Notes under the pieces: generated by a model | What the model saw: the letters and a program-made list of their open reading frames with translations, nothing else | What the model was told of the DNA's origin: nothing | Databases searched by the model: none | Shown: positions 13,461-19,410 of the stretch, piece by piece | Layout of the letters: each line of letters opens with the position of its first letter | Numbering within the stretch: the first letter of the stretch is position 1 | Source of the DNA: Guillardia theta CCMP2712 | Lineage: Eukaryota; Protista; Cryptophyta | Assembly (NCBI RefSeq): GCF_000315625.1 | Contig: NW_005434584.1 | Coordinates: 196,851-260,850 of the forward strand | Direction: 5' to 3' | DNA: 64,000 nt | Made by a program: the position numbers and the translations under genes

Positions 13461-13908
13461 CCTTGTTTTCATTCTTCCTGATCCTCTTCTTCGTGCTCAT
13501 GCTCTTGCTCTGGCACCTCCTCTAGTCGTGATGTCTCCTCCTCCTGATTCTGCTCCTTGTTATCAAAACTCCTTCTTGCTTTGCTTGTTCTCCTCCTCCT
13601 TCTACATGTGACTTGATCCTGGGTCTCCATATTCTACTGCCCTTGTACCCCTACCTATTTCTGTTGCCTTCTGTCCATACCTCCTTATTCACCTTGACCT
13701 CTTTATTAACCTTGTCAGTTTCATCTTCGTTCCTGTCCTCTTTTATTGTTCTTGTTTCCTTCCAGTTTAGACTTGTCTCCTGTCTCTCTGCGGCTTCTTG
13801 GAGAATCTGTTGTCGCATATCTACGAAAAGAACTGCAGGATTGTTTTTAGAACTAAAGTCAAATACCAGGTTTAGAGTTTTAGATATCCGTCCCAGATCC
13901 GAGCTACC

Positions 13909-16900
13909 ATGGCCTTGAACTCGAATCAGACGTTTGGTGGGCTTTCGTTGGTAAAGAAGGACGGGTCAAAGTCACAAGTCTTTCCTCTTGTAGAACAAAG
14001 ATACATTTTTGGAAGGTAACGAGAAACACAACTGACTGCCTTTTGTGTGAGTTTCGACTGATTGTGATCAGGGCCGACCATTGTGATATTCGCATCAATC
14101 TTCTTACCGTATCAAGGGAGCATGCCGAAATATCTGTCGACAGTGATTTGCAGGTTGAAATAAACTTTTGATATCACAAATGTCTTACAAGACTTCTGTG
14201 ATATTCTCTCCACTGACGCATCTCCTGACGACGAACAGGTATGGCTCAAGGCCATGAGCACGACTTCAGAGACTGTTGTCTCCGGAAAGACCATCAAATC
14301 CAAGGTCATGTTGAAGGACAAGGACGTGATTCTGATCGGAGAACGAAAGTTTATCTTCCATTCTCGGGACTCGTCAGACAAAGTAGTTAAAGAATCGATC
14401 ATGTGTGCTTCCATATGATTCACGTGCGCAGGAGCAAGTTTCAGAGGTTGAAATCAAGCCCAAGAGAGATAAAACTCCACTGAAGGAGTGCAACCTTGTG
14501 AAGGTTCTCATAATTTTTTCATCCTTTCTTCTTGACACTGAAATTCATCGCAGCCTCGGCCTCAGCGATTCTATGCGACGCCTACCAAGGATTTCTCTAA
14601 GATGTCAGACTCCTCTCAGGACAACAGAGTGCACTGTGCTAGAGGAGAAAATTCAGCCAAGGTAAAATCTTAGGATACTTCCAGAAAGGCCTTGTTGAAT
14701 TTCTGCCACTAGGTCAACCTTCCAGCTGAATTCGTCGAAGACAAGGAAAATACCGATTCTATTCAACAGTCGTTTAGCGATGACAATGTGTCGCTGAATA
14801 CTTCGGCATCCAAATCACCTCTAGCCATTGTGAGCTCCGTATATCTAGTTTCTCAGGCTTGACCCTGGCACAGGACGCTGTAAGCTTCGAGGCGGATCAA
14901 CAGAGTATGGCCTCACCGCTCGAAGTCACGTCGAGCCAGCATTCCTTTCCTGTGCCGCAGGTTCTTGTATTTGGAAACACACAGAAGTTGGATACAGGGC
15001 TTCTACTAAACGCAAAGGACAATGGAAAAACAATTTCAGCCCCAATCATGACCCCAAAGAAGGGAGTCCTGAAAACTCCGGGGTCTGTTAGCAAACGAAG
15101 AAGTGTCTGTTTTATAGACGGAAGAAACGAGACAGCCTACCTTGCGTCAGCTTCAGATGACCTGGACTTTGTTCCTGGAATCATAAGAGTGTCATCGAAG
15201 GTCCGGCCGGAAGAGGTTGCTAATCGGAAACCTGCAACTATGATGGGAGAGGTGAACCGTAAGCGATCAGCTGTTTCAACTGAGACCTCTCCAAATCCAA
15301 GAGTGACGAAGAAAAGGAAGGTCGAGTCGACTGACCATGATCGAATCAAGTTGATCTCGAGCCCCAATCGCGGAGTACATTACATCCAGATGTGCAATGA
15401 TGGCCCGGCAATGCTCGAGATCAAAGATTTCTTTGAAACAGCGTCTGGAAAGATGTATTCTGATCTGATTGGCGTTGCGATTCAGGGATCAAAGGAAAAC
15501 AGTGAAATACAATCCAGCAAGGAAAATCTGCCTTCAGAACAAAGCAGATGGATGATTGACTTTGCAAAAACCTTCATTGGCAAACAAGCTCTGAATGACG
15601 AACAGCGTGATAGCATTTGCGATCACTTTGATGAGGCGTCTAAATTCCTTTTCAAGAAGAACATCCATCAGACCGATGCCAAAGAAAAAGATATCCTTAA
15701 AATTTGCTTCGAGAATGCAAAGCCATCAATCCCTGCCAAAACAGCAAAAAACAAAAGGAATCGTTCGACAACATTGAAAAAATGTATTACAAAAAAAAGG
15801 AAACCCATCCCTGCTGGGCCATCCCAGCCAAACAAGGAAGAAAACTCGGAAGGCCAACGAAACTCCAACAATACTCTCCGTACTAACACGACCTTTTCCG
15901 CAAACAAGCATGTCAAAGAACAAGAGGACAAACCAAACTCAAACAAAACTTTCTTTGACAACAATCAGCATAGAAAAAACAAGGAGGACGAGGCGAGCTG
16001 GGCAGAGGAGCAGTACCGGTCCATCGCGCCCCAGACGGCAGAGAAGGCCAGGAGGAGCCGCCGGTCGTCGGCGGGGGCGGGCGAGCAGGAGGCGTCCAAG
16101 GAGGAGGAGGCGAGCTGGGCAGAGGAGCAGAGCCAGTCCATCGCGCCCCAGACGGCAGAGAAGGCCAGGAGGAGCCGCCGGTCGTCGGCGGGGGCGGGCG
16201 AGCAGGAGGCGTCCAAGGAGGAGGAGGCGAGCTGGGCAGAGGAGCAGTACCGGTCCATCGCGCCCCAGACGGCAGAGAAGGCCAGGAGGAGCCGCCGGTC
16301 GTCGGCGGGGGCGGGCGAGCAGGAGGCGTCCAAGGAGGAGGAGGCGAGCTGGGCAGAGGAGCAGTACCGGTCCATCGCGCCCCAGACGGCAGAGAAGGCC
16401 AGGAGGAGCCGCCGGTCGTCGGCGGGGGCGGGCGAGCAGGAGGCGTCCAAGGAGGAGGAGGCGAGCTGGGCAGAGGAGCCGTACCGGTCCATCGCGCCCC
16501 AGACGGCAGAGAAGGCCAGGAGGAGCCGCCGGTCGTCGGCGGGGGCGGGCGAGCAGGAGGCGTCCAAGGAGGAGGAGGCGAGCTGGGCAGAGGAGCAGTA
16601 CCGGTCCATCGCGCCCCAGACGGCAGAGAAGGCCAGGAGGAGCCGCCGGTCGTCGGCGGGGGCGGGCGAGCAGGAGGCGTCCAAGGAGGAGGAGGCGAGC
16701 TGGGCAGAGGAGCAGAACCGGTCCATCGCGCCCCAGACGGCAGAGAAGGCCAGGAGGAGCCGCCGGTCGTCGGCGGGGGCGGGCGAGCAGGAGGCGTCCA
16801 AGGAGGAGGAGGCGAGCTGGGCAGAGGAGCCGAACCGGTCCATCGCGCCCCAGACGGCAGAGAAGGCCAGGAGGAGCCGCCGGTCGTCGGCGGGGGCGGG

Positions 16901-18356
16901 CGAGCAGGAGGCGTCCAAGGAGGAGGAGGCGAGCTGGGCAGAGGAGCAGTACCGGTCCATCGCGCCCCAGACGGCAGAGAAGGCCAGGAGGAGCCGCCGG
17001 TCGTCGGCGGGGGCGGGCGAGCAGGAGGCGTCCAAGGAGGAGGAGGCGAGCTGGGCAGAGGAGCCGAACCAGTCCATCGCGCCCCAGACGGCAGAGAAGG
17101 CCAGGAGGAGCCGCCGGTCTTCTGTCAAATGTCCTGTGGTCGTTGAAGTCTCTTCATCAAGCTCATGTGAAGATCAAGCTTTTGTTTGTGCATCGAAGGG
17201 CACGAAGCGTGGTGCTCGCTTGTTAGTTCTTGAGTCTCAATCTTCGGTTATGAGCTCTCGGCATCGTCGATCAACTCGGCAATCAGTTCTGCTTTCCTGC
17301 TCCTCTCCTCATGTTTCTATTGGACCTGCCTCAGAGTTTCTCATCACACCTCGCAAGGAGTTTGACTGGAGATCGGTGGGTCTTGCTTCTGTTGTTCCTC
17401 CTTACCTGGTTTTCCTCTTTTCCTGGGATCAGGCAATCCTCTTGTCCTCTGCTGTTTCACTCATTCCTTCACTCCTTCCTTCGCTTGCTTCTTCCTACAC
17501 ACAAGACTGCCATCCCTTATGCGACATAATCTTCATCTACCTCCCTACATATTTTCATTCTGTTTCTTATCTTTTTCACTAGGGCTTAGAAGACAAGCCG
17601 GCTGAAGCGAAGCGTGGAACCAGATCAAAACGCAAATTGAGTGCTGTTGAAGATGCTCCTGTCGAAGAAGAGGTGAAGGAGGTGTCTGCCAAACCCAAGA
17701 CAGGCGGGAGAAAGAAAATGGCAACGGTTGAAACCCAAGATATCCAGGAGAACCCCAGCAAGAAGACCAAGAGAACCTCTGCTGTTGTCCCTCAAGGCGT
17801 GGAGGCAGTTCCCAGCTCAACGAAAGCCAGTCGGTCAAAGAAGGCCAAGGACGTGCCCTCGGAGGACAAGGAGCAAGCAGCTCAGCCAAAGGCATCGAGG
17901 GCATCCAGGGAGCCCCGTCAGAGCAAACGGGTCAAGGAGGAATGTGCTGAGCCTATCGAGGACAAGAAGGAACAGCCTCGTGAGGTGAGAAGCAAGAAGG
18001 CAGGGAGGGAAGCCAGCGACAAGGACAAGGTTGAGGCTCCTGCTGCCCGAGTTGGTCGTCGCAAGAAGGATGTGGAAGCGAAGGAAGAGGAGGTTGCGGA
18101 GGAGAAGGAGGAGCCAAAGCGAACGTCCTCCCGCAGAACATCCGCTAAGCAGAAAAAGAATGACCAGAGCAGCTCGTCTGCCAGGGCCCAGGACGCTCCC
18201 AGCTCTGAGCCTCCTGCGACGAAGTCCAGACGGAAGACGGCTGCTGGGTCAGGAGGAGAACCTGAGGCGCCGGTCAGCAGGAGGACGAGGTGAGAAAAGA
18301 GGAAGGAGCAAACGAGAGGGACTGACTGATTGACTGACAGGTCGCGGGCCATCTAA
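13909..18356 (+). CDS. Multi-exon FHA-domain protein with Ki-67-like architecture
   Basis: Exons 13909-14015, 14072-14153 and 14239-~14382 splice (GT-AG) to MALNSNQTFGGLSLVKKDGSKSQVFPLVEQRYIFGRADHCDIRINLLTVSREHAEISVDSDLQVWLKAMSTTSETVVSGKTIKSKVMLKDKDVILIGERKFIF (FHA GR..SxxH). A large exon runs ~14873-17376, a K/R/E-rich exon 17583-~18289, and the last exon ends TAA at 18356. The small exons in 14430-14870 are only approximately resolved. Confidence 0.85.
15981..17119 (+). repeat. Coding tandem repeat, 117 bp / 39 aa, ~9.7 copies
   Basis: Unit EASWAEE(Q/P)(Y/N/S)(R/Q)SIAPQTAEKARRSRRSSAGAGEQEASKEE, in frame within ORF 14859-17582. Confidence 0.98.
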
Positions 18357-18632
18357 TGAATTTCACTCACTTTCACTAACTGAACTAACTTAGTCACCCT
18401 GATTGACATCAACTAATACATCACTACAAGATTAAGCTCTGACTTCCCAACCCCCTTCCCTCAGTATTGCCTGATTCAAGGCTAACGCGACTGAACGGCA
18501 TGGCATCGACTCTGTCTGAAGGCCTCCCGTCAGCTCCTTCCATCCTCTCGTTGACCAGCACAAGATCAAAACAGATCAGTGGTGTCAGACAAGGTTGCGA
18601 GCCGTCTTGAAGTTCGATGTCACTTCCTTACC

Positions 18633-19410
18633 ATGTGAGAGAGAGAGGAATGCGATACTACATGTGTGAGAGGAATGCGATACTACATGTGTGAGAGAGA
18701 GGAATGCGATACTACATGTGTGAGAGAGAGGAATGCGATACTACATGTGTGTGAGAGAGAGGAATGCGATACTACATGTGTGTGAGAGAGAGGAATGCGA
18801 TACTACATGTGTGTGAGAGAGGAATGCGATACTACATGTGTGTGAGAGAGAGGAATGCGATACTACATGTGTGTGAGAGAGGAATGCGATACTACATGTG
18901 TGAGAGAGAGGAATGCGATACTACATGTGTGAGAGAGAGGAATGCGATACTACATGTGAGAGAGAGAGGAATGCGATACTACATGTGTGAGAGAGAGGAA
19001 TGCGATACTACATGTGAGAGAGAGAGGAATGCGATACTACATGTGTGAGAGAGAGGAATGCGATACTACATGTGTGTGAGAGAGAGGAATGCGATACTAC
19101 ATGTGTGTGAGAGAGAGGAATGCGATACTACATGTGTGAGAGAGAGGAATGCGATACTACATGTGTGAGAGAGAGGAATGCGATACTACATGTGAGAGAG
19201 AGAGGAATGCGATACTACATGTGTGAGAGAGAGGAATGCGATACTACATGTGTGAGAGAGGAATGCGATACTACATGTGAGAGAGAGAGGAATGCGATAC
19301 TACATGTGTGAGAGAGAGGAATGCGATACTACATGTGTGTGAGAGAGGAATGCGATACTACATGTGAGAGAGAGAGGAATGCGATACTACATGTGTGAGA
19401 GAGAGGAATG
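18633..19410. repeat. Minisatellite, ~26 copies of GGAATGCGATACTACATGTG core plus variable (TG)n(AG)n linker (unit ~25-31 bp)
   Basis: Read directly from the sequence. Confidence 0.97.

Follow-up and report, generated by a model that had tools for sequence, protein, structure and literature searches.

Guillardia theta encodes a probable cryptophyte member of the Ki-67-like protein family

Introduction

Ki-67 was long regarded as a vertebrate-specific protein. The human protein is 3256 amino acids (aa) long, and the basic, chromatin-binding C-terminus of vertebrate Ki-67 is known as the LR domain. RepoMan (CDCA2) is a chromatin-associated scaffold of protein phosphatase 1 (PP1), and phosphorylation in mitosis switches the binding of its RVxF motif. 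In June 2026, a bioRxiv preprint (10.64898/2026.06.18.733134) reported Ki-67-like proteins from tunicates, sponges, molluscs, insects, fungi, Dictyostelium, Thecamonas and a thraustochytrid, while plants were considered probably to be without a homologue. According to that study, the general features of such proteins are an N-terminal FHA domain, a PP1 motif, repeats, basic charge, disorder and cyclin-dependent kinase (CDK) sites; only the FHA domain is conserved, with nothing beyond it, and two accepted non-vertebrate homologues were tested in cells. Here we describe a gene of the cryptophyte Guillardia theta CCMP2712 that combines an FHA domain, a PP1-docking type of motif, tandem repeats and a basic tail. 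The gene lies in a window of 64,000 nucleotides (nt) of contig NW_005434584.1 (positions 196,851 to 260,850, forward strand), and all positions given below are those of the window.

An initial annotation of the window, made from the letters alone, had seen in this gene a homolog or convergent analog of Ki-67 in a lineage where none is generally described. For cryptophytes this held, as neither they nor Guillardia are mentioned in the main text of the preprint, and the literature on Ki-67 together with Guillardia yielded only an unrelated kinetochore review. Among other protists, Dictyostelium, Thecamonas and a thraustochytrid are already covered (10.64898/2026.06.18.733134). As the preprint had widened the Ki-67-like family to include protists, the novelty of the locus lies in cryptophyte membership and not in the family. 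Our findings indicated a real, expressed nuclear gene of G. theta whose product is, with a probability of roughly 0.62, a cryptophyte member of the Ki-67-like family as it is now drawn for non-vertebrates. New here are the cryptophyte member itself, its own SILK-like and RVxF variant of the docking site, and a folded domain specific to its family.

Gene structure and transcription

The gene (13909-18356, forward strand) comprised nine exons and eight introns, with a start ATG at 13909, a stop TAA at 18354-18356 and a product of 1284 aa (Table 1). The introns were all of the GT..AG type and measured 44-207 nt. Public transcript runs were aligned to window positions 13700-18600, and each of the eight intron joints was seen in spliced contigs of runs X1 and X2, which stem from two different studies; the predicted splicing was thereby borne out. 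Transcript contigs of a third run (X11) were colinear with the genome, and a raw-read RNA run (X16) placed only two reads on the locus. One spliced contig of 1818 nt extended from 13867, in the 5' untranslated region, through all FHA exons into exon 7 as far as 16019, 40 nt into the repeat array. The FHA exons and the repeat exon therefore lie on one transcript, which speaks against the separate transcripts that the initial annotation had named as a possible flaw in its reading. A second contig began at 17090, within the last repeat, and continued over exons 8 and 9 to the stop codon.

The translation of exon 7 was 100% identical to the public protein GUITHDRAFT_144688 (P0001, 1258 aa), which is annotated as "hypothetical protein / FHA domain-containing". 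Exon 3 is mispredicted in the public model, which sets the donor site 78 nt too early (window 14305-14382 affected) and so loses 26 residues that form the last FHA strands. The transcript contigs ran uninterrupted across 14236-14382 and were then joined to 14432, and P0001 does not contain those 26 residues. The public gene model of GUITHDRAFT_144688 therefore needs correction, since its FHA domain is cut off.

Ki-67 subtype of the FHA domain

The FHA domain of the G. theta protein was distributed over exons 1-3, with its Gly-Arg pair straddling the junction of exons 1 and 2. The three exons read as had been proposed, exons 2 and 3 each matched the Pfam FHA family, and the same family also matched P0001. 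When the truncated public FHA domain was compared with solved structures, the FHA domain of human Ki-67 scored 34.5 bits and the next chain 19.2. A profile restricted to six FHA domains from the cryptophyte clade gave 57.7 bits for human Ki-67 (E 9e-15) and 33.2 for the next structure, and a broader profile of the eight nearest FHA domains gave 92.8 bits and 53. The lead of Ki-67 among the solved structures thus amounted to 15, 24 and 40 bits, respectively. In the broader-profile search, CHFR, Dun1, Rad53, KIF13B, CEP170, MDC1 and NIPP1 all stayed at or below 35 bits. The NIPP1 FHA domain (2jpe) scored 13.3 and 19.2 bits with the truncated domain and the broader profile, and, when the cryptophyte profile was used, did not enter the list at E ≤ 0.01.

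Residues 1-330 of P0001 were also searched exhaustively against 1.84 billion representative proteins, yielding 277 matches at E ≤ 1e-3. The best 150 of these contained a platypus "proliferation marker protein Ki-67-like", which carries an FHA domain, PP1_bind and 14 KI67R stretches, as well as a coelacanth and a salmon-louse protein, each with FHA and PP1_bind. In the reverse direction, the FHA domains of these three animal proteins reached 47-59 bits against the spliced model of G. theta but at most 26 bits against the other five FHA loci that a six-frame search of its whole genome found. Identity to the three was 34-37% over about 105 nearly gapless columns from the N-terminus. In the six-frame search with the platypus FHA domain the locus ranked only sixth, because three exons each encode only a part of its FHA domain; the rank was corrected once the spliced model was scored. 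A short exon-like match to the N-terminus of the platypus FHA domain (L005) was considered as a paralog and rejected, as a tblastn search with the first 400 residues was empty there. Searched by word index, the FHA portion of P0001 returned only the protein itself, and a feature search of the ESM Atlas returned generic FHA clusters only.

A maximum-likelihood tree of 68 FHA domains, based on few columns and with its deep forks not separated, placed the clade of cryptophytes (100/98) and that of animal Ki-67 within one group of 48 rows (87/94), apart from most multi-FHA proteins. The tree was compatible with the Ki-67 subtype but was not decisive. The Gly-Arg, Ser and His residues of the FHA domain were retained in the cryptophyte clade. 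Structure-profile scores, exhaustive search and reverse scores together support, at the level of sequence comparison, the assignment of this FHA domain to the Ki-67-type subfamily that the initial annotation had suspected.

Conserved PP1-docking site

Approximately 160 residues downstream of the FHA domain, a SILK-like motif (GVLK) was followed by an RVxF-type motif (KRRSVCF), both confirmed in the DNA at the positions first reported (Table 1). RSVCF satisfied the PP1 pattern [RK]-x(0,1)-[VI]-{P}-[FW] and was the sole match in P0001 to the stricter [RK][RK].?[VI][^P][FW]. The docking block was conserved in ten representatives from the exhaustive search, including P0003 from the cryptophyte Hanusia phi and P0021, which represents the 50%-identity cluster of the protein from a metagenomic locus, L001. 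Its consensus was K[GS][LV]LKTPxSxxKR[RK]SV[CI]F[VI]DxRNE, and the pattern [GS][LV]LKTPxSxxKR[RK]SV[CI]F was conserved across eleven relatives. Of the 11 relatives carrying the block, 10 had GVLK, GLLK or SLLK as the first element. Among the eight aligned relatives, K, R, S, V and F of KRRSVCF were invariant, and the extension that follows the motif, IDGRNETAYLASASDDLDFVPGIIRV, kept D, R, N, E, A, S, D, P, G and R unchanged among the aligned relatives. Conservation of the RVxF motif in relatives, proposed as a check by the initial annotation, was thus found and extended to the SILK-like element.

P0001 residues 235-300 were co-folded with the annotated G. theta PP1 (P0173, GUITHDRAFT_67966) in three runs, and all three scored 0.86, with the best control at 0.65. 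Among reference cases, 51 of 78 solved complexes came up to this mark, as did 2 of 108 mismatched pairs; in a family with many solved complexes, a pass indicates likeness, not binding. The runs shared at least 76% of their contacts, with a partner predicted local distance difference test (pLDDT) score of at least 66. The lowest-error contacts were those of the Val and Phe of KRRSVCF against PP1 residues 168, 169, 242, 243, 261 and 289-292 (PP1-alpha numbering), residues that make up the RVxF groove. The first half of IDGRNETAYLASASDDLDFVPGIIRV ran along PP1 292-300. P0001 residues 245-251, spanning GVLK, contacted the equivalents of PP1-alpha 53-59, 114-119 and 166-169, presumably the SILK groove seen with Inhibitor-2, a label given by residue number and not by superposition. 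By alignment, P0173 and PP1-alpha are numbered alike after residue 140, and up to there the numbers of P0173 are three lower. The docking site is, in these models, compatible with a conserved motif fitting the canonical PP1 grooves, in line with the docking type proposed earlier for the SILK and RVxF pair, and the protein would be expected to bind PP1 in the cell. As a separate observation, P0173 carried three extra residues (CKR, residues ~137-139) relative to the aligned solved PP1-beta chain; because they adjoin the start of the exon beginning RYNVKIW, a splice site in the public model of P0173 may be mis-called.

Orthologous proteins and the repeat array

The metagenomic ortholog P0002 (locus L001) had first two exons of the same lengths (107 and 82 nt), and its FHA domain was 63% identical. 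After one further intron, L001 continued as a single open reading frame (ORF) of 1443 aa from the RVxF block through the repeats to the tail. In order, this ORF contained GVLKTPNSVNKRRSVCF, the conserved extension known from G. theta, the basic cluster KRRRVE, a middle region likewise shared with G. theta, repeats that have diverged but follow [FY]A.[VI]AP[KQ]T.EK..RRSS (many with TPxK), SPHVTIG....FITPRKENDWR and a basic tail. The order of FHA domain, PP1 site, repeats and basic tail was common to the orthologs. The tail of L001 (13610-13720, P0002 residues 1205-1239) also contained a sub-threshold SAP-like DNA-binding motif (17.4 bits against 23.9) that is absent from the G. theta protein. 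A T2SSI match in P0020 was below the cut-off and was rejected. Three other metagenomic proteins with an N-terminal FHA domain (P0023, P0026 and P0095; 1061-1451 aa) may represent further protist lineages with Ki-67-like proteins. The FHA domains of P0023 and P0026 were 46% and 42% identical to that of G. theta; all three proteins were without the cryptophyte PP1 block, and P0026 had RRKSVQW at residue 466.

The ten 39-aa repeats of the initial annotation corresponded to 9.7 copies of a 117-nt unit. The units varied only at three adjacent codons (Q/P, Y/S/N and R/Q). A Pfam Enterotoxin_a match in the array (five stretches; 21.5 bits, with the cut-off at 21) was rejected as a composition artefact of the RRSRRSS repeats. 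No transcript contig bridged the interior of the array (16020-17089). The array is nevertheless read as continuous because its frame is open, the depth was equal on both flanks (12.9 and 14.5; 15.1 and 15.7), and L001 covers the corresponding region with its single ORF. Repeat-derived contigs of 100 nt reached 15-17 times the flanking depth (221 against 12.9-14.5; 236 against 15.1-15.7), which suggests some 15-17 repeat copies rather than the 9.7 held by the assembly. The assembly may have collapsed the array, or its high G+C content may have biased the coverage.

Comparison with Ki-67 and other PP1 scaffolds

Like Ki-67 and Ki-67-like proteins (InterPro/CDD "FHA_Ki67"), the G. theta protein has an FHA domain of their subtype at its N-terminus, carries tandem repeats internally, is basic as a whole (net +32, pI 9.3) and has a basic C-terminus. 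The K/R-rich tail noted initially was substantiated, with 25.8% K+R, a net charge of +19 and a pI of 9.95 in the last 240 aa. The protein is far shorter than human Ki-67, and its parts outside the FHA domain are analogous to those of Ki-67 in layout only. Where Ki-67 has the PP1_bind region (RVSFG..L.PELFD..LPP), G. theta appears to use the SILK-like and RVxF pair with a different extension; where Ki-67 has KI67R repeats with CDK sites, G. theta has unrelated 39-aa repeats with RRSRRSS. RepoMan resembles it functionally in its RVxF motif, but has no FHA domain, and the PP1_bind/KiR-SLiM region common to RepoMan and Ki-67 is absent from the G. theta protein. In Inhibitor-2 and KNL1, which pair SILK with RVxF, a [GS]-[ILV]-L-[KR] element likewise lies N-terminal to RVxF, and a Ser after basic residues stands in or near the motif, where phosphorylation could block docking. 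In G. theta, position 2 of the element is V or L and not I, the spacing is 9 residues, and the proteins are otherwise unrelated.

Several observations weighed against membership in the Ki-67-like family. The Pfam families PP1_bind (PF15276) and KI67R (PF08065) had no match in the protein at E ≤ 10 or E ≤ 0.1, nor in its relatives, although the positive controls P0140, P0122 and P0131 matched PP1_bind and the platypus control has its KI67R stretches. Alignment of the cryptophyte block with animal PP1_bind regions by hhalign gave a probability of 3%, a BLASTP comparison of the protein, FHA domain excluded, with platypus Ki-67 found nothing (E > 0.2), and the basic tail showed no sequence similarity to the platypus Ki-67 C-terminus. 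Outside the FHA domain there is, by these comparisons, no detectable homology to Ki-67. Within it, the conserved Asn of the S-x-N-x-T loop was Ser or Ala across the cryptophyte clade, a replacement that may alter peptide binding. The tree gave no resolved sister relation to animal Ki-67, and its unresolved group also held L003, a long-branch G. theta paralog. The repeat array was acidic (net -8, pI 5.4) and had no S/T-P sites, its candidate phosphosites being RRSRRSS. The several S/T-P-x-K/R sites of the initial annotation were present in number, five against 2.1 expected from shuffles (P 0.06), but minimal S/T-P sites were not enriched in the G. theta protein (10 against 11.5 expected); the L001 ortholog has 46 S/T-P sites, 19 of them full-consensus. 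The margin of the co-fold over its controls was only +0.21, with 0.65 reached by a control in which PP1 was replaced, and the pass may reflect memory of solved RVxF complexes. Finally, the predicted folded middle domain is without a described counterpart in Ki-67. It was modelled by AlphaFold2 as a beta-hairpin and four helices (block-mean pLDDT 67-92 except for one low-confidence loop; 132 of the 265 residues of the modelled stretch, 262-526, had a pLDDT below 50), was common to all cryptophyte-type relatives, and was matched by no solved structure (Foldseek E no better than 0.5; VIA-align Z at most 4.2) and by no Pfam family. Of the original proposal of a Ki-67 homolog or analog, the FHA subtype and the order of parts thus stood, and homology beyond the FHA domain did not.

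Alternative explanations

These features can be accommodated by a protein whose FHA domain is of Ki-67 type but which serves as a functionally different cryptophyte PP1-targeting scaffold, for example as a nucleolar, transcription or DNA-damage adaptor; its Ki-67-like order of parts would then be the usual look of long disordered nuclear proteins. Such a scaffold would account for the lack of homology outside the FHA domain, the acidic repeats without S/T-P enrichment, the family-specific folded domain and the lost Asn. However, the non-vertebrate Ki-67 homologues accepted in the preprint are equally without homology outside the FHA domain, and the general feature list given there is mostly met by the G. 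theta protein (10.64898/2026.06.18.733134). We consider a different scaffold function rather unlikely, though it is the alternative to be taken most seriously. Convergence, in which a chance likeness to Ki-67 arose within the large FHA superfamily and an RVxF motif was acquired independently, draws on the few columns and unresolved deep forks of the tree and on the ease with which short RVxF-type motifs arise. It is improbable in view of the gap of 24-40 bits between Ki-67 and every other solved FHA domain, the reciprocal best-match relation for the loci compared, and an alignment that is nearly gapless from the N-terminus onward.

A protein of the NIPP1 type (PPP1R8 family) would also present an FHA domain, then RVxF, then a basic C-terminus, but NIPP1 is much smaller, has no repeats and belongs by score to another FHA subfamily, its domain remaining at 19.2 bits or under the listing threshold where Ki-67 reached 57.7-92.8; we regard this identity as very unlikely. 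Equally hard to credit is an artefact of prediction, in which two neighbouring genes (one with the FHA domain, one with the repeats) or an assembly-collapsed repeat were joined in silico. The unbridged interior of the array and the excess depth of the repeat contigs over the 9.7 assembled copies would fit it, yet the 1818-nt contig spans the 5' untranslated region and all FHA exons into the first repeat, the other contig leads from the last repeat to the stop, depth is equal on both sides, the frame is open, and the ortholog runs from RVxF to tail in one ORF.

Proposed function and significance

As a member of the Ki-67-like family, the protein would be held on chromatin or nucleic acid by its basic tail and other basic patches, while its Ki-67-subtype, phosphothreonine-binding FHA domain would recruit a phosphorylated partner. 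The docking site, consisting of GVLK, KRRSVCF and the strand extension, could bring PP1 to this nuclear or chromosomal location. Phosphorylation of Ser287, within the RVxF motif, and of the repeat serines may switch binding through the cell cycle, as in Ki-67, RepoMan and KNL1, with the RRSRRSS of each repeat as a putative cluster of basophilic-kinase sites. The protein might act at the surface of mitotic chromosomes.

A member from Cryptista with a conserved PP1 site adds a distant eukaryotic supergroup and favors an ancient origin of the FHA and PP1 scaffold. A stronger proposal, that the gene is a true Ki-67 ortholog inherited from the last eukaryotic common ancestor, and that cryptophytes keep an older SILK and RVxF docking mode later replaced by the PP1_bind region in animals, is tentative and somewhat doubtful. 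If it were true, an FHA and PP1-docking organizer of the mitotic chromosome surface would be ancestral to eukaryotes and not an invention of animals or vertebrates. In addition, a short homolog with simple repeats could make it possible to tell apart what FHA binding, PP1 recruitment and charge each do.

Features of the locus

Table 1. Features of the G. theta gene, with window positions and the evidence for each
Feature	Window position	Strand	Evidence
Whole coding region, nine exons, 1284 aa	13909-18356	+	Spliced contigs; public model P0001
Exon 1: N-terminus and first FHA strands, ending at FGR	13909-14015	+	Joint 14015/14072 in X1 and X2; L001 exon 1 likewise 107 nt
Exon 2: FHA core CDIRINLLTVSREH with conserved Ser and His	14072-14153	+	Pfam FHA E 4e-4 alone; L001 exon 2 likewise 82 nt
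Exon 3: last FHA strands	14239-14382	+	Pfam FHA E 6e-3 alone; transcript contigs
Exons 4-6: linker with conserved KTPLKE and SFxDxNVSLN patches	14432-14503, 14554-14661, 14713-14829	+	Joints; L001 alignment
Exon 7, 834 codons: PP1 block, NLS-like KKRKV, middle domain, repeats, SPHV..TPRKE.DWR motif	14874-17375	+	
SILK-like motif GVLK, residues 274-277	15063-15074	+	Conserved in relatives; co-fold contacts
RVxF-type motif KRRSVCF, residues 284-290; anchors Val288 and Phe290	15093-15113	+	Conservation; co-fold
Conserved extension IDGRNETAYLASASDDLDFVPGIIRV immediately after the RVxF motif	15114-15191	+	Conservation; co-fold
KKRKV basic cluster	15309-15323	+	K.R invariant across relatives
Conserved, predicted folded middle domain, residues ~366-496	15339-15731	+	AlphaFold2
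Tandem array, 9.7 copies of a 117-nt (39-aa) unit, each with SIAPQTAEKARRSRRSS	15980-17119	+	98% identity
Conserved motif SPHVSIGPASEFLITPRKEFDWR with full CDK-consensus TPRK	17304-17372	+	Alignment with L001
Exons 8 and 9: K/R-rich tail	17583-18289, 18341-18356	+	Joints 17375/17583 and 18289/18341; composition

The linker encoded by exons 4-6 is likely disordered, and the KKRKV cluster of exon 7 resembles a classical nuclear localization signal (NLS). A weak ParE-like Pfam match in the tail was rejected as an artefact of its basic composition. Directly downstream of the 3' end of the gene, at window positions 18633-19320, lies a further tandem array with a unit of about 30 nt (gaggaatgcgatactacatgtgtgagaga).

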